Positions 37,246 through 46,113 are shown, counted from the whole stretch's first letter. The stretch is 56,870 bases of DNA, filler included, from Platydemus manokwari (GCA_037951405.1; 5 parts of 5 records of this genome joined end to end with filler, not necessarily neighbours in it); one strand, 5' to 3'. Notes: generated by a model not told the origin, from the letters alone. Numbers and translations are program-made.

Positions 37246-37640
37246 AGTCAAGTCGGGATCAGCGCCCGAAAATAAAAAAACAGAATGAAAAGTTATCAAA
37301 AAGACTGATTACTAAAATCACACATAAACTAAGCATTGGAATTACCGACCAAAAAAGACTGGCAAGAATCCATGGAATTTAACTTCTTTTACAGACCCAT
37401 CGGATGTGTTTACTTGATGTCGCGGATCTTCGTTTTCAATTCGCTAAATTTGTTTGCCGATTGATATACTTGATATTTTCTTTATATCTCTTATGTCATT
37501 GAGGCATATTTGAGTTTGCTGCCATTTGTAGACATGTGCCTGTCGATTCTCAGCTTCTAAATATGGATTAACATGAAAATGAATTTGATTAGTTAAGGGG
37601 ACGTGTGTTTATCGGGTTTATGTGTATTGACCCTTTTTAT
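37246..37640 (+). mobile_element. Diverged LTR copy related to the LTR at 55004-55851
   Basis: Colinear blocks cgggat.agc.cccgaaa, aagactgatt, ttgatgtc.cgga, agtttgctgc.atttgt, cttctaaatatggattaa and gaccct shared with 55120-55510. Confidence 0.7.
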
Positions 37641-40026
37641 GGTTTTTCTTGGTTCCTGGGTCCCTTTTGACTAATTTGTGATATACTTTCCATCTCTGCA
37701 GGCTTTGATAAGAGGATTAAGATTATTTTCATATCTTCAGGTAGGCTGAAGACAATTATTGAGATGATCCCATTGATGGTTTTTGAGAAGATTTTACTGA
37801 AGATTGAGATTAAATTGATGATCCGGCTCTGTGACATTTTAAATATATGGTTTTTTTAAAATTAATGTGGATATTTAATTAATATTCTAGGTTTAAATAT
37901 GAATAAGATATTTTTTAAAAACTATCAGTAAAATCACTATTTTTAAATTCAAAATAAGCAGCTATTTAACAGTAATGATAGTTTATTCGAAATTCCAACA
38001 GAATAAAAAATAGTTTAAAAAACTAAAGAAGGCCTATCAATTTATGATTATATAAGCATTCGTGAATCCAGTAGAAGCACTACTATTCAATCCTAGAAAT
38101 TATTATCGGGATGTGTAAAAAGCTAAATGTATATAATAAATGCTATTGTTCAATAAATTACTATTATTCGATGAACAATTAATTTGTGGAGCATCAATAT
38201 CAAGAAATTTATCAAGAGGAAGACATTTCAATTTCATCACATTTCGAGTGTCATAATCATATTTATTACATAATATCAATACTATTATTCAAGTATTTTT
38301 ATTTTCAGTCATTGAACTTCTTATCAAATTATCAATATCATTAAAATTTTTATCAAGTTTGAACAATTTCTTTATACTTGATGGTAAACAATAAGAATTA
38401 TAAATTGGTAAAAGTGTTATTTTAAATATTCGCTTCTATAATTTCACTCTGCTTTTTACATAAATGGAAAGATTTACCTTATATTTATAAAAACAATAAA
38501 TTTAAATCAAATTTAATTTTTGAAAAAAAGCTTGGATAATAATAAAATAATTTTCTTACAGAAATGGTAAAAATTAATTGCAACATTTTCAATTCAAGTA
38601 AACTTTTGTTTAAATTTAGTTTTGAACATTTTCAAATTGTTCTAACTTTAATCAATGTTTTTACAAGATGATCACATATTACAAAATCTATTTTATGATT
38701 TCTTTTCTTAACTTCAGCCTTCCTGAAAATTGATATATAATTGATTTAAGTGATGGTTATCAAACACAGCATTTGTAATGTTGCTCTATATAAATATATA
38801 TAAATTTTTATTTTGCAGGGATTTCACTTGAGGGATCGAAGCTCCTTAGATTGGTTTAATAATAATAATTGCACGGTAAGATATATTTTTTTATATATGG
38901 ATTTTAATTATTTTGTCAACGCTTTGCTTGTTTTGGGTTGTTTCTTGCAGATTTTCTGAAAATTAAAATTTAAGAGTAACTCATTTTATAACTAAATATG
39001 TAAATATCTTAAAACATTTTAACAAGTTATGACCTTAGTTTGTCATATTATAAACCGAATAATTTCATTTTTATTTCATATTAGTATTCGATTTTCATTG
39101 TCAACAAATCAGTAATTAAGCTGCTATAAACATGCTTTTGATTGCTTTATATATGTAAGTATTTAAAATTAACATTTTAAAAGCGATTTCAAAACTGCCC
39201 ACATTTCTTTATTAATTTTACTTAATGATAATTAAACATGATTTATTTTTAAATGAACGAGAATAAATTTATATTATGGGCACAATCGAAGATTATAAAA
39301 CAAAAATGATATATTCTCAAAATTTTTAATGAGCACTTTTTGGATATGTAACGTCCCAACCCACGGTCAAGATTACGTAATATAATTTTCTAAGTAAAAG
39401 TTTTAGCAGATAAGTGTTAATGAAGTTATTTACGCTGGTATTTGATTAGGATCAACCAATAAAATATAATTGCATAATAATATTAATTTGCCACATGATC
39501 GCATAATGTGATTTCTGTGGTTCAATAAGAAGCCATTCAGAAAAGTTAAACTGAATTATCTTCGAAACTAATATTTTTTGTTAGATTAATTTGAAACCCA
39601 CTCTTTATACAAAAAATCAAAAGACGGGTTTTCCTTTTCGTTTTTTGAGATTAATCTATGAACAAAATTGTCACATCGAGTTTATCATTAGGACAAGGTT
39701 AATTTTAATTAGGACTAAGAAATTCATCAAGTTATGAAAAATCACAGAAAAGAAGAACAATCATAAAATAGTTTTGAAATTGAGAATAAGAGAAATTAAA
39801 ATGTTTCATTTAAGGAAAAAACTTTTCTTAAGCCGGAATATGAATAATAATATAATAATCTTAATAATAATCAATATCAGATAACTGGAAAAAAATGATT
39901 GTTTTTATGGTTTTATTTAGATAATGTTGATTACAACATTATAATTTTGACCACATCAACCATTTATATAAAAACTAGAAGACAATTAAGGTGTTTTATT
40001 TAATATAATCAAATTTTAAATATGGT

Positions 40027-43000
40027 TCAACATAGTCCGCAAGTTGCTTTGCACAATTTGTAAGCATCATTTTCATTTTTATGACAACCACCATTATCTT
40101 TGAATAATTTGCAATCTTGATTAGACAATCGATTCTCACAAACTAAAAACGATAATGATTAATATTTTATTGTTGCATTGAAGATTGTAGTACTTATGTG
40201 TGTTGAACATTTTTCTTTTCTGGTGTACACTTTTCTTCTACATTTAGACTTTTCTTTGCGTTCATCATCATCTCTCACGTAATAGTAAACGTGTCGTAAT
40301 CTGTATCCTTCGGAACAACGAGTTTTTCTTACATTTCTCTGTGGACATTTGCGGCAATAAAATTTTCTCGAGTCTCTAATTTCAACAAGAACATTGAATT
40401 ATTTAAATTTGAGTAGTCTATTTTACTCACATTTTAAATCGACAACAACCTTTTTGTCTAATTGAATATTTTGTTATCAATTTCAAAAATCCTGATTTAC
40501 CACAACTTGTTACAAAATGTTGATCATGTTTTGGACATTTAGAACAACTGAAAGCTTTCTTTGAAGCAATAATGTTGCACTTTCCATTTTTCAATTTTAC
40601 TGATTGTATAGTTGATATATATCTCACAGAGTTTTTACATTTATGAATTATTCGGAATGGCTTTTTGTAGCATACTACAATGAATAAATTCTGAACCAGC
40701 AATTAAATAATTATTTGAAATTTATTCAATTGAGTCAGCACCGAATATTTTCGTTAAGATATTGTTATCCTATTTAATTCACTTTCGTGATATTTTTAAA
40801 TTGACCAACTTCATATTTTTTGTTATTTATTAAATGAAAGTAATTAGAATGGAATATTTTTACTTAATGCTGAAATGATAAGCTTGGATTCAAATAAACT
40901 TAAATTTATTATTAATTTCTTATCATAACTCAGTTTTAGACTATTGCTCGGGATTTGGACATACACAGCTCCACCTGTTCTAGTACCAACATCATGACAT
41001 AATAAGATTAATTTAAAAAGTAATTATAATTATAATCATCAATAATTGTTTCTTTAATGCTATTTTCGACAGATGGAATCTATTTAATGTCATTGCTGAT
41101 ATAACAATCTTTATGCTATTTATATTTCTTTCAAGTCTTCATAGATTGAAAGTCGCTAAGTTTACTCTGCTCATGTTATTTGTCCTATGATTAAACTAAC
41201 TTGGATTACCAACACGATTCATTTTAAATCATATCAAATGCTTCATTTTCACCTACAAACTGAATATTAATCGTAAAATAGTTCATTACCATTTCTAGAA
41301 AACTAAGTATATAATTAAATAACAATTCTAATCATCCAATAAATTAGGTTAATAAATTTAAAATTTAATCTCGGTTAGGGTTATATCTTCAGCATTATTT
41401 AAGCTAATTTTAATCATTTTTTTTATTTCTGAGTAAATCAGCTCAAATAGCAGCTTCATCTCTATTTCCAATGTTATTTGGTCTTAATCCAGTTTCATGT
41501 ATTTAGATCAAAGTCACCCTCCAATAAACTTTGAGCTTAAAAATTAATAAATCGAATTAGTATGAGTGCAGAAATAAAACATTTTATCAAATTCATAGAT
41601 ATTATTTAACAATAATTTTATTCTAACTAGCTATTAAATTTGTTTCATCGAGGACATTAATATTAAATAGAAAATATTGTAATGAAATGCTTTATTTACC
41701 ACTGCAGGATTTTTTCCGCTTTTTGATTTGCATGACACATTTACCATGTTTAGGATGTTTGAAAATAATTATCTGAATTTTGAATCGATAGTTGGTTTTA
41801 TCACACTTCGTTTCATATTTATAAGACTTTGAACATTTGCATCTAGTGCATGTTTTCTTGCAAACTTTTTTGATAATTTTATTGGTACATTTCCCTAAAC
41901 GATGAGGTATTATATAAATACAACATATCATTATCAAACCTTTTGTTTTCAATTTTTGACATTTATTATCCGTTTTCCAGTTGTTGCACCCATCATGATG
42001 ACAAGGTATCAATCCTTTCCAAGATCTCTTCAGACAACGTCCACTGCGGCTAACAATGAAATAAAATATACTTGATTTCCTGTGGCAATGTAAACGATTT
42101 TTTAGTTTTGCACATTTGCATTTGCCTAATTTTTTGATTACTGGTGAAGAACAGACTGAAATTGTAATTGTTATTTATTGAAAAATTAACAATTTTTGTC
42201 ATACTATTTTTGCATATTTTTACACTCAGAATACAATGAGTCGCTTTTTGTCTCCGAAGATCTTCGTAACCGGCCCCCACCCTCAATTGATGGGGATAAA
42301 TTTTAGTTTCTAGTTGAGCCGGATTGACTTTATTCAAAACACAAACGCCAGGTCCTTTCGTCTTGGTTATATAGAAATCAAAACTTTTACAAGCTGACAT
42401 AACTTTGCACTTCATTAAACATTCATGATAAGAAATCATCTTAAAAGAGCCTAAATTAAGTTTTTTATTATAACGACGATCCGTAACTAAGCATGATTGA
42501 TAGTTTATCTTAAACCCAATTTTACTATTTGTTGGGCATTCTAAAAATATTATTTACTACAATCTGTAATTTAATTCATAATTTTACTTGAACATTGGTT
42601 GCATGTCATTCTACATAATTTATTTCTATACACTCCATGTTTTTTACATCCTCCAACGAGTCTTATTTTCTCACAAGTTTTGACTGGTAAAACATTGGCA
42701 CATGATTTACCATGTGCCGCTCCAATGAATCGATCTTGGCATTTCAATTTTCGCACGTACATCTTTCTAACACATTTGCATGTACGAGAGATATATAAAA
42801 TGGTTTTGATTATTTGAAATTTTTGATTGCATTTACTTTGAATAACCTTTGGTTTTGGACAATCTAAAACACGAATTTTAATTAATTAATTGTTTTCTGC
42901 AAGATATATTGATATTAATAATCACATAAAGTTGTATAAATGTAACTGGTTATTTTTATTAGTCTTTGTCTTATTTTAAATGAACTAAAAAATTTACGAT

Positions 43001-45633
43001 TATTTAATAGGATTGTTTAGTATATGAATGCTTTCACGAGGAAAAGCCAATATTGATGAATGGAAAAGATAATTGAATAGATTTAATGATAATTTAACAA
43101 AATATTCGTTTGAAATCTAATTTATAATTATTTAACTATTCCGAACAAAATTATTCTTATTCTTTTTAGTACTCGAATCTACAAAGCATATTATGCAACT
43201 GAAGAAATCCATCTTACTTATTGTCTTAGAGATTCTTTTGGATTTCAATGAACATTTGTTTTCTTCTTTTGAAAATTTGAACCACGTATGGAAAGTTACA
43301 AGATATTTATCTTTGAAGCAATTTGTTTTGGTCGCTCCTTTTGGACATTGGCACAATTCTTTGAGGCGCTTGGATAGTTTGATGCATTTACAATTTCTTT
43401 GAACGACCCATGAAATTATAACAAACCGATATTTGTAGTTTGAACTGTGGTCTTTTTTGCATTTGCTTGTATGTTTTTGGACGTTTTTCTGACATTCTAA
43501 ATTATAATAAAAGGAGATAAAACAAAACAATGATTGTGTAAAATATTGAAAGCAAGATTTATTGTATTTATGCTATGATAATAATTATTTAAAATTATTT
43601 TGATATAAAAACTAGTAATTGTTACTATGCTTTTCAACTTTCAAAACTTTGACTTCTTTTTTGCAACGAGCAATAATTTCTTTTCTTCGTTTTACTTTTA
43701 TTAATTTGTTCCTGATTTCAATATGCCTCCATATTCCATTATTGATGCATTTTCTCAAAATTGGACCTTTACTGCACCTGCATGGTACCTTTGAATGTTT
43801 CATCATTTTTATGCATTTGCAATTCTTGGGAATAAACCATTTGATTTCTTTAATTCTATACCAAACCTTGCCTATAGGGATGTTGCATTTTCCACTGTGG
43901 ATTGTTGGCTTTGAATTACATTCTGTAATCAATCAATTATTTTTGTAAAATTAAACCATCGAATAAAGTTAACTTGTCTTTTGAGTTTTTTTGATGGATT
44001 TTTTAACGCAAGTTTTCTTTTTTTCATTGAAAATTGTAAATGTTTTACGGTAAATTTTTCGATTGGATTTACAAATTCTTTCAATGTGTTTATTTAATGG
44101 ACAACCTGATTAAGAGTTAATAAAATGAAAATCCATTCTTAAACTTACAGCATTTCGCATGTCGGCTTTCTGTTCTGTGATGACACTGACAGTTTTTAGG
44201 GAAAAATTTAATGATACGAATTGTTTTTGTGCATGTTATTCGGTTGCATTTGGATTTTAGAATTTTTGGTTTAGCGCAGACTAAAAATTTAAATGGAATT
44301 AAATTTTATTTTATTTTCATCTGGTAAAAATTACTGATAGGTATTTTGGCGACATTTCTTCGTTTGATACAATTATGGTTAGCGAATGTTTCATAAAGTT
44401 TAATACGCATGACATATTTATCGTTTTTACACATTTTCATTCGTTTGCTCTTTTTACAACGGCAAAGTTTGTTTTGTTTTTTTACGAACTTGACACATTT
44501 ACATTGCTTGATGGATCGTTTTATGGTAATTATTGATCTGTAGTTGGATGACATACAATGGCCAGTTCGATGTTGGATTTTAGGTCTACATTCTACAAAA
44601 AAATATTTCAAACATTTAAGTTTTATTTAATACAGGATTATTACTATCTATTAAATTTCCAGAAATATCCTTTTTGCTGACATGTTTAACACACGATTTA
44701 TTCTTGAATTTCCAATCGATTTTAATTAATAATCTCCGATTTTTGAGACAGATATTAAATTGTCTTGATTTTTTAGGACAACCTAATTGAAATTCAAAAT
44801 TTAGTAGATCATGTTATAAATAAATTATCGTACAGCACAGCCAATTTTTAGTAGTGACCTTTCTTATGCATTGTTTACCAATAAATCGATATCCGTAAAT
44901 GTATGTTTTTCCAATACAACCAGTTTCCTTTGAACATTTACTTCGTTTTACTTTTGCAATTGGACATGCTTTTCAAAGGATTAATTTGTCATTTTATTTA
45001 TGATTCGTAATTACCTTTTTTGCAGATAGTTCTTAAAATTTTCTGTGGTAAATTATTCAATTGATTGATTTTACGTATTCTCCACAAATGATTCTTTGAA
45101 CCGATTAAAAGGCCTTTCAAGAATTTCCAACCTTTGTGTGATGGTCTTACTGCAACAGCATTCAAACGGACATTTAATTTTTCCAACTTTCTAATTTCTT
45201 TGAAAACATTTTTAATATTTCCATCATTGTGTCCATCACTGATAATGTAAATCAATTGAAGAATTCCTGGTCGTGATTCTCTTAATATCTGAGAAATTTA
45301 ATCTGGTATTCGAAAAATGCTAAAATAACAATGTTACTTTCGTCCTTGTTAGATGAAGTGCTTTCGCTAAATTTGAGATTCTTCCACTATAAGGCAGTTC
45401 ATTGATAAATGAAATCAAAGAACTATGCTCATGATGATCATTTAAATTGAATACGACACTGGGGTTTTCAGAATATTTTACCAAAGCAAAACGATAACTA
45501 CTTTTTCCTATTGGGAATATGTTTACAGTTTCTTTAAGTAATTTTTGAATTAATGATTGATATTCTGGCTGCCTACTAGACACTGCCTGATCAACCAAGA
45601 AAATCACTTCTGCCGCTGATTTCTTTAAGCATA
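40027..45633 (-). CDS. Large mosaic extracellular-type protein: vWA, Lys/Cys-rich repeats, ShKT, PAN/apple, ShKT, repeats, ShKT (5'-incomplete)
   Basis: More than 15 GT-AG exons. vWA: EVIFLVDQAVS...RFALVKYS...IYIISDG (45633-45015). Many ~45-aa CPK...C...R.I...F...CxC...C repeats. ShKT-like: CANVLPVKTCEKIRLVGGCKKHGVYRNKLCRMTCNQC (~42600-42700) and CNNWKTDNKCQKLKTKGKCTNKIIKKVCKKTCTRC (~41840-41990). PAN: SYHECLMKCKVMSACKSFDF...CVLN (~42330-42430). Terminal ShKT: CENRLSNQDCKLFKDNGGCHKNENDAYKLCKATCGLC*. Confidence 0.85.
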
Positions 45634-46043
45634 CTGAAGTAACATAAAATTTAATTGAAAATATACAAATTAAATAATAATTTAAGAATCATATTAATTA
45701 TATAATTTTTATTTTATAGAAATTATGGTTGACGTTCTCTAATTCTCTCAAGAGACTTTAATTTTTTCTGGGAATTGGTTTCGTATATTGTTATTGGTTA
45801 TGTGTCATATTCGACCAATCTTGTAATTCAGTGATATTCATTTAATATTTTTACTATTCCTTTATCTGACTTTAGTCAGAAAAATGACCACGAAAAATTC
45901 AGTTTTTTTATTATTTTTATTAAAATAAATTTGGTAAATTCTAACAGTATTATATAAGAGCTATAATAAATGAAATCGAATAACCTGATATAAGTCATCT
46001 AATGTTTCAAGATAAAACATCCCACTAACTGAATTATATTATA

Positions 46044-46113
46044 CCAGGTTGAGTCAAAAGTTATTCATGTTTTTATGCAGGTATTTTATTAACACAAATT
46101 GTTATAACGCTGA
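46044..46113 (+). mobile_element. Mariner/Tc1 terminus at a contig break
   Basis: 70 bp identical to 25614-25683, preceded by TA. Confidence 0.75.

Follow-up and report, generated by a model that had tools for sequence, protein, structure and literature searches.

A sixteen-exon gene with an array of basic cysteine units: a candidate polycationic extracellular scaffold

What kind of protein is encoded at positions 40027-45633 of a 56,870-nucleotide stretch of DNA from Platydemus manokwari (GCA_037951405.1; parts of five records joined end to end with filler, here called the window), and is the module that fills most of this protein known from elsewhere? The locus encodes a vWA domain, a PAN/apple domain, three ShKT-like modules and a long array of lysine- and arginine-rich cysteine units. 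Its product is of a known kind, an extracellular mosaic protein; what is new is the undescribed module that makes up its bulk. There is about an even chance that the locus is one gene whose product is secreted and polycationic and would bind polyanions as a scaffold in matrix, mucus or temporary adhesion, a reading drawn from composition, domain types and analogy with the glue of the flatworm Macrostomum lignano. The analysed piece covers positions 37246-46113 of the window (approximately 25% G+C). Family scans, searches and structure predictions were run exon by exon.

Gene structure and domain content

Between 45688 and 40030, the minus strand carries all of the long open stretches with protein-like content. 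This strand was read, and for each pair of neighbouring open stretches all GT...AG combinations that keep the frame were listed. The resulting model is given in Table 1. At the local composition the probability of a stop is 0.089 per codon, or approximately one stop every 11 codons, and a 98-codon open exon would arise by chance with P ~1e-4. Because approximately 1,160 codons are open where a stop is expected every 11 or so, the intact frame over more than 15 exons that the initial annotation had described is confirmed, with 16 GT-AG exons and 1,160 residues free of stops. The borders 40027 and 45633 that came with that description match the stop codon (TGA at 40029-40027) and the E1 acceptor exactly. 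The locus is a real animal gene, modelled with 16 exons.

All 15 introns are GT-AG and 13 of them are in phase 1. In order, they are 49, 46, 51, 52, 54, 43, 51, 129, 354, 47, 70, 45, 1,025, 55 and 51 nucleotides (nt) long; 11 of the 15 fall between 43 and 55 nt, and the others are 70, 129, 354 and 1,025 nt. The acceptors are mostly TAG and not the nematode-type TTTCAG. The exons have a G+C content of 31.7% vs 22.5% in the introns. When E9 is read through its donor, the region 43135-43217 (minus strand) shows an ATG with a short hydrophobic run behind it, as well as two more phase-1 donors. The stretch may provide alternative donors for splicing or a start site inside the gene.

The vWA domain is encoded by E1 and E2. 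The Pfam family VWA (PF00092) matches E1 with E = 9.8e-14 (profile positions 2-91) and E2 with E = 1.4e-4 (positions 97-171 of 174), and the two exons together cover positions 2-171 of the 174. The metal-ion-dependent adhesion site (MIDAS) motif DxSxS reads D-Q-A-V-S, with the first serine replaced by alanine, and a complete metal site is not found. This agrees with the degenerate MIDAS reported earlier. Metal-dependent vWA domains are defined by a complete MIDAS (DxSxS plus a threonine and an aspartate), but a domain can belong to the vWA fold without it; in several vWA domains of collagen VI, too, the motif is incomplete. The closest solved relatives in the PDB are the vWA domains of collagen VI alpha-3, the mussel protein PTMP1 and the integrin alpha-2 I domain.

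The PAN/apple domain, also recognised in the initial annotation, passes the cut-off of PAN_1 (PF00024) marginally (22.1 vs 21.4 bits) and aligns to profile positions 21-64 of 76 only. A PDB sequence search with this exon, E11, returns no match.

Three ShKT-like modules had been proposed, one of them at the C-terminus, and they differ in support. The C-terminal module 3 passes the cut-off of Pfam ShK (PF01549), with 23.5 vs 20.9 bits. Module 1 reaches 14.6 bits, below the cut-off, and aligns end to end with the sea-anemone ShK-like peptide 6ckd, with six of six cysteines matched (E = 0.06). Read unspliced, the stretch with module 2 has a broken cysteine pattern and gives no Pfam ShK match. Its cysteine spacing after splicing is the sole evidence for both the module and the 45-nt intron between E12a and E12b. 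The C-terminal part of the earlier proposal is thus upheld at the Pfam threshold, and the other two modules are weaker candidates. No vWD, C8, TIL or EGF domain is found in the Pfam scans of the gene.

The protein is of the extracellular type, because its vWA, PAN and ShK domains belong to types found in extracellular proteins and phase-1 introns lie at the module borders.

The basic cysteine unit and its relatives

The initial annotation had noted well over a dozen lysine/arginine-rich cysteine repeats, and the alignment resolves them into 16 units of 35-51 residues each (approximately 45). Three cysteines are invariant among the 16 units, arranged as C, 9-10 residues, C, approximately 20 residues, C. 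Many units have a fourth cysteine approximately 10 residues beyond the third. The model as a whole is strongly basic, with 18.2% lysine and 7.2% arginine (25.4% together), 5.0% aspartate plus glutamate and a net charge of +236. It contains 98 cysteines (8.4%).

In the N-terminal half of the protein, A units, with five cysteines and a CxC before the last strand, alternate with B units, which have three cysteines. Each A/B pair therefore contains eight cysteines, and there are five such pairs (E3+E4, E5, E6+E7, E8 and E9). Because the cysteine counts of the A units and of the B units are both odd, the pattern suggests a disulfide between A and B. The borders of the units coincide with phase-1 introns, as is expected of exon-shuffled extracellular modules. 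Pairwise identity among the units is only 14-37%, and repeat scans of the piece find no DNA-level repeat among them. The array is thus old, and the cysteine pattern and the charge have been kept.

For comparison with domain libraries and for structure prediction, an alignment of 33 units (A4) was assembled from the units in the window and units from relatives. With A4, AlphaFold2 models the canonical four-cysteine unit U13 with a predicted local distance difference test (pLDDT) score of 93.9 in five of five models, as a three-stranded antiparallel sheet with strands at residues 3-8, 16-26 and 33-43. In the prediction for A/B pair 4 (E8), which used an eight-row alignment and has a mean pLDDT of 69, the A unit is a confident hairpin and the B unit is poor. 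The unit is therefore predicted to be a flat three-stranded antiparallel sheet that is pinned by disulfides and covered with lysine and arginine.

By sequence comparison, the unit is in no curated family. When the 33 aligned units are compared singly with Pfam, there is no family match; a single weak, sub-threshold match to TSP1_ADAMTS and scattered noise are returned. The unit alignments find nothing in the PDB either, whether by sequence or by profile search. Thrombospondin type 1 repeats (TSR) and pleiotrophin/midkine domains, small basic sheets of three strands that are stapled by disulfides and bind glycosaminoglycans, were both considered as identities for the unit. The first is rejected: one of the 33 units has the weak TSP1_ADAMTS match, the tryptophan ladder and the CSxTCG motif are missing, and no TSR appears in the Foldseek results. 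The second is also rejected, with no Pfam match and a single Foldseek match of probability 0.11 that is seen with the poorer model only. The likeness of the unit to these domains is a functional analogy, and no profile or structural match supports kinship.

Relatives of the unit are rare. In word-index searches, which take only proteins of 0.55-1.75 times the exon length, neither E8 nor the vWA exon E1 finds a homologue. The 16-unit profile was compared with 1.84 billion representative proteins and returned four matches, of which three are true clusters: P0003 and P0004 from Macrostomum lignano and a hypothetical protein from a Joint Genome Institute (JGI) metagenome (P0002/P0005). The top match, P0001, is a false positive; it consists of 14 identical 73-residue repeats (1,094 residues) and aligns to profile positions 17-39 only. 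The protein encoded in the window is itself absent from this set, which includes helminth proteomes; this absence and the scarcity of TTTCAG acceptors make a nematode origin less likely. The low G+C content, the introns of 43-55 nt, the TAG-type acceptors and the M. lignano relatives together suggest a flatworm or some other small invertebrate as the source. A word search seeded with P0003 finds only more M. lignano proteins. Metagenome scans with the vWA exon and with the PAN exon find no relatives. The earlier description of the protein as lineage-specific holds within the limits of these searches, because the unit has no Pfam or PDB match and only three true clusters are found among the 1.84 billion proteins.

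The kinship with the M. lignano units is real but distant, as judged from BLASTP and from profile matches in both directions. By BLASTP, E5 aligns with M. lignano P0015 (A0A1I8IWZ4) over all of its 85 residues, with eight cysteines in register (E = 8e-9), and E9 aligns with the same protein at 2e-8, also with eight cysteines in register. A profile built only from units outside the window finds units in the window at 1.8e-6 and 2.3e-5, and all of its matches better than 0.05 are on the coding strand and inside modelled units.

The relatives fall into two groups by their unit plan. The uncharacterised M. lignano proteins P0015, P0012 (A0A1I8HBH7) and P0003 (A0A1I8HCF7) have an A/B double unit of approximately 85-95 residues like that of the gene in the window. 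They share the eight cysteines in register, the CxC before the last strand, a Cys-Cys-Cys-Pro junction and a strongly basic composition, but their identity to the window gene is only approximately 25-35%, and the sequences compared are fragments. P0015 has a signal-peptide-like N-terminus. The P0004 cluster (A0A1I8JML5, PAA48661.1) and the metagenome protein P0005/P0002 (L001) have the same unit plan (C, 9-10 residues, C, a hairpin of approximately 20 residues, C, approximately 10 residues, C; the third cysteine is followed by a basic patch) and match the profile over its full length. Their units are regular four-cysteine units that lack the A/B alternation, and no other domains are seen in these proteins.

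The M. lignano proteins with A/B units are named 'VWFA domain-containing protein' in UniRef. In several M. lignano entries named for vWA, vWD, vWC or SUEL-lectin domains, none of these domains is found by Pfam, save a partial vWD at the end of P0013. The aligning parts of these entries consist of the unrecognised basic cysteine unit.

Two of the relatives have a distinct layout of their own. P0005 (L001 39-2696, JGI metagenome 3300078644) is an 885-residue eukaryotic protein with nine basic four-cysteine units, which alternate with strongly acidic linkers and Ala/Gln/Glu-rich stretches; opposite charges are thus present in one chain. In P0006 (M. lignano NIVC01004089.1, L002 217-12452), the four-cysteine units lie in genomic super-repeats of approximately 2.5 kb, each encoding approximately 225 residues. 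The UniRef names of the P0006 cluster (SUEL-type lectin, VWFD) have no Pfam match in the sequences compared.

Scans of the piece for Rfam families, tRNAs and tandem or dispersed repeats find nothing relevant, and Pfam scans of the open reading frames (ORFs) in the 2.8 kb downstream of the gene give no match. The end of the piece, 37246-37745, has a G+C content of 35%, above that of the rest, and has no Pfam, Rfam or tRNA match on either strand.

Table 1. Positions of the modelled exons, domains, units and flanking features, counted from the first letter of the window; exons are listed in coding direction and all other features from low to high position.
Feature	Position	Strand	Content or basis
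Whole coding model	45633-40027	minus	16 exons (E1-E15, E12 split), 1,160 residues, no internal stop
E1	45633-45338	minus	first part of vWA
E2	45288-45015	minus	second part of vWA
E3	44968-44834	minus	with E4 holds A/B pair 1
E4	44782-44645	minus	with E3 holds A/B pair 1
E5	44592-44335	minus	A/B pair 2
E6	44280-44149	minus	with E7 holds A/B pair 3
E7	44105-43974	minus	with E6 holds A/B pair 3
E8	43922-43626	minus	A/B pair 4
E9	43496-43218	minus	A/B pair 5
E10	42863-42588	minus	U11, then ShKT-like module 1
E11	42540-42226 (other possible donor: exon end at 42205)	minus	PAN/apple
E12a	42155-41940	minus	U12 and start of ShKT-like module 2
E12b	41894-41700	minus	rest of ShKT-like module 2 and U13
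E13	40674-40431	minus	U14, U15
E14	40375-40194	minus	U16
E15	40142-40030, then TGA to 40027	minus	ShKT module 3
vWA domain	45015-45633 (E1 and E2)	minus	49-nt phase-0 intron splits the domain
A/B pair 1 (U1, U2)	44645-44968 (E3, E4)	minus	unit alignment
A/B pair 2 (U3, U4)	44335-44592 (E5)	minus	unit alignment and BLASTP to P0015
A/B pair 3 (U5, U6)	43974-44280 (E6, E7)	minus	unit alignment
A/B pair 4 (U7, U8)	43626-43922 (E8)	minus	unit alignment and AlphaFold
A/B pair 5 (U9, U10)	43218-43496 (E9)	minus	unit alignment and BLASTP to P0015
U11	42727-42861 (first half of E10)	minus	non-window profile, E = 2.3e-5
ShKT-like module 1	42589-42705 (second half of E10)	minus	Cys spacing 8-8-10-3-2
PAN/apple domain	42226-42540 (E11)	minus	Pfam PAN_1
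U12	42004-42153 (first part of E12a)	minus	unit alignment
ShKT-like module 2	41839-41988 (E12a/E12b)	minus	spliced Cys spacing 8-8-8-3-2
U13, canonical four-Cys unit	41701-41835 (E12b)	minus	structure-prediction target
U14, U15	40433-40672 (E13)	minus	unit alignment
U16	40195-40347 (E14)	minus	non-window profile, E = 1.8e-6; sole unit with weak TSP1_ADAMTS match
ShKT module 3, C-terminal	40030-40140 (E15)	minus	Cys spacing 8-8-10-3-2
Short ATG-led, strongly hydrophobic ORF, 13 codons	45651-45692	minus	directly upstream of E1, frame differs from E1
Long intron E9/E10, 354 nt	42864-43217	minus	E9 frame open 28 codons into the intron
Intron E12a/E12b, 45 nt	41895-41939	minus	splits ShKT-like module 2
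Long intron E12b/E13, 1,025 nt	40675-41699	minus	no recognisable content
AATAAA polyadenylation-type hexamer	39995-40000	minus	27 nt 3' of the stop

Proposed function and competing explanations

The proposal of a secreted, polyanion-binding scaffold is drawn from composition, from the domain types and from analogy with the charge model for the glue of M. lignano. In that model, positively charged lysine/arginine regions are proposed to bind negatively charged carbohydrates (PMC6410801). At the N-terminal end of the visible protein lies a vWA domain of the collagen VI type whose metal site is incomplete, and PAN and the three ShKT-like modules are interspersed along the chain. Through their charge, the arrayed basic modules would hold polyanions at many sites at once; these might be sulfated or acidic glycans, glycocalyx, mucus or surfaces of negative charge. 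Further contacts, to proteins or carbohydrates, would come from the vWA and PAN domains, and the numerous cysteines would stabilise or cross-link the protein.

A narrower proposal concerns the A/B unit itself. It may be a new extracellular domain, a polycationic three-stranded sheet held by disulfides, that marks a family of secreted proteins confined to flatworms or shared by a wider, unsampled set of small invertebrates. It would act as a folded polyanion binder, working by charge, in mucus or reversible adhesion. This remains tentative and is favoured less than the scaffold as a whole.

The flatworm temporary-adhesion proteins Mlig-ap1 and Mlig-ap2 (PMC6410801) and Mile-ap3 and Tmed-ap3 (PMC6745481, PMC9229212) are a functional comparison. 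Like the predicted protein, they are very large, cysteine-rich mosaics with an extreme positive charge; they are secreted and come from the same kind of animal as the closest relatives of the unit. Their other domains are vWD, C8, TIL, EGF, C-lectin and TSP1, whereas the gene in the window has vWA, PAN and ShKT. By its published description, Mlig-ap1 has basic regions of low-complexity Gly/Arg/Lys and not folded cysteine units. The sequence of Mlig-ap2 in the supplement contains threonine-rich repeats of 221 and 255 residues that are unrelated to the basic cysteine unit. The M. lignano relatives of the unit are therefore not pieces of Mlig-ap2, as judged from its sequence, nor the lysine/arginine regions of Mlig-ap1, as judged from their described low complexity.

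The footprint proteome of M. lignano (PMC6410801, Dataset S2) includes very basic proteins of 2,784, 3,108 and 6,570 residues with isoelectric points (pI) of 9.7-10.4, two of which have a Pfam vWA domain and one of which is collagen-VI-like. The proteins of 2,784 and 3,108 residues have pI values of 10.1 and 10.4; one is a vWA protein and one is collagen-VI-like (PMC6410801). Peptides of these two proteins contain CxC and triple-cysteine motifs that recall the unit junctions, which is a lead and not evidence.

Collagen VI alpha-3 and mussel PTMP1 share only the vWA domain with the predicted protein and lack basic cysteine units, PAN and ShKT. PTMP1 is a vWA protein of the mussel byssus, and its place among the best solved vWA matches is counted as an analogy for an adhesive role. 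The word 'adhesive' in the initial annotation is plausible, by analogy only. The words 'cuticular' and 'host-modulating', offered beside it, find no support: most acceptors are of the TAG type and not TTTCAG, the sole relatives belong to a flatworm that lives free, and there is no sign of a parasitic helminth or of a cuticle. The parallel that had been drawn with vWA/PAN invasion adhesins of unrelated parasites is likewise reduced to a resemblance. Apicomplexan TRAP/MIC adhesins combine vWA with TSR or PAN in one secreted protein, but an intron-rich gene of metazoan type, ShKT modules and a unit like the basic one, all present here, are not known from those adhesins. None of the searches made returns an apicomplexan adhesin as a relative.

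Several results weigh against the scaffold. Foldseek comparison of both unit models with the PDB gives no significant match (best E = 0.6-0.7), and the unit is not placed in a known binder fold. The characterised flatworm glue proteins lack the basic cysteine unit, with Mlig-ap1 judged by description. Neither Pfam nor phmmer detects vWA, PAN or ShK in the M. lignano homologues, which are fragments; the full architecture is thus without a retrievable counterpart. This is congruent with the initial view of it as unrecognised, since it was not found elsewhere in the searches made. The remaining points concern the 5' end. The open stretch above E1 contains no in-frame ATG, and the 480 nt between E1 and the piece edge contain no ATG-led exon with a phase-1 donor. 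A signal peptide cannot be placed within these 480 nt. The closest hydrophobic ORF that begins with ATG overlaps the open stretch leading into E1 and is in another frame.

The same features that suggest a scaffold also suit a different secretion. A protein that is cysteine-rich, highly basic, repetitive and lineage-restricted resembles many rapidly evolving reproductive secretions, and the gene could encode a reproductive or encapsulation product (eggshell, cocoon, cement gland or seminal fluid). Known flatworm eggshell proteins differ from it in composition, being tyrosine-rich and glycine-rich rather than lysine- and cysteine-rich. This explanation has a small but appreciable chance of being correct.

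It is slightly less probable, and unlikely, that the locus holds two or three members of one gene family in tandem, split at the 354-nt and/or the 1,025-nt gap. The single-gene model is weakest at these two introns, which are 7 to 20 times the typical intron length. A split after E9 would fit the frame that stays open past its donor, with its ATG, short hydrophobic run and phase-1 donors, but this candidate internal start has only 13 codons and lacks a basic n-region. A split after E12b would fit the stop that is reached five codons beyond the modelled donor when this exon is left unspliced, but E13 has no in-frame ATG and the 1,025-nt gap has no convincing signal-type exon. At each of the two gaps, the exon before it ends in a phase-1 donor and the exon after it begins at a phase-1 acceptor, which keeps the frame.

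Decay or mis-assembly, in which the locus would be a pseudogene or an artefact of 5' assembly, is improbable. The lack of an in-frame start, with the nearest ATG-led hydrophobic ORF in another frame, is what such a history would leave. Against it, approximately 1,160 codons are open over 16 exons despite the high expected density of stops, every splice site is canonical, and the first exon may lie outside the piece, whose edge is only 480 nt upstream of E1.

It is very unlikely that the protein is a carrier or precursor of ion-channel-blocking or immunomodulatory ShKT peptides released by proteolysis at a dibasic-rich scaffold: three ShKT-like modules with conserved six-cysteine spacing, one at the very C-terminus, and plentiful lysine/arginine pairs throughout the protein would suit it, but the modules amount to approximately 10% of the protein, only one of the three is above the Pfam cut-off, there is no sign of a venom or parasitic context, the repeat relatives come from free-living M. 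lignano, and ShKT domains in animal proteomes are mostly accessory modules of large secreted proteins and not toxins.

Significance of the module

Mosaic extracellular proteins are ordinary. In this one, the bulk is a module that is in no curated library and whose fold is predicted with high confidence; a search of 1.84 billion representative proteins detects hardly any relatives. Should it prove to be a folded polycationic binder, the module would be a new building block among the few known glycan- and surface-binding domains. For the field of bioadhesion, it would then provide a structured and tractable counterpart to the low-complexity lysine/arginine regions of flatworm glues.

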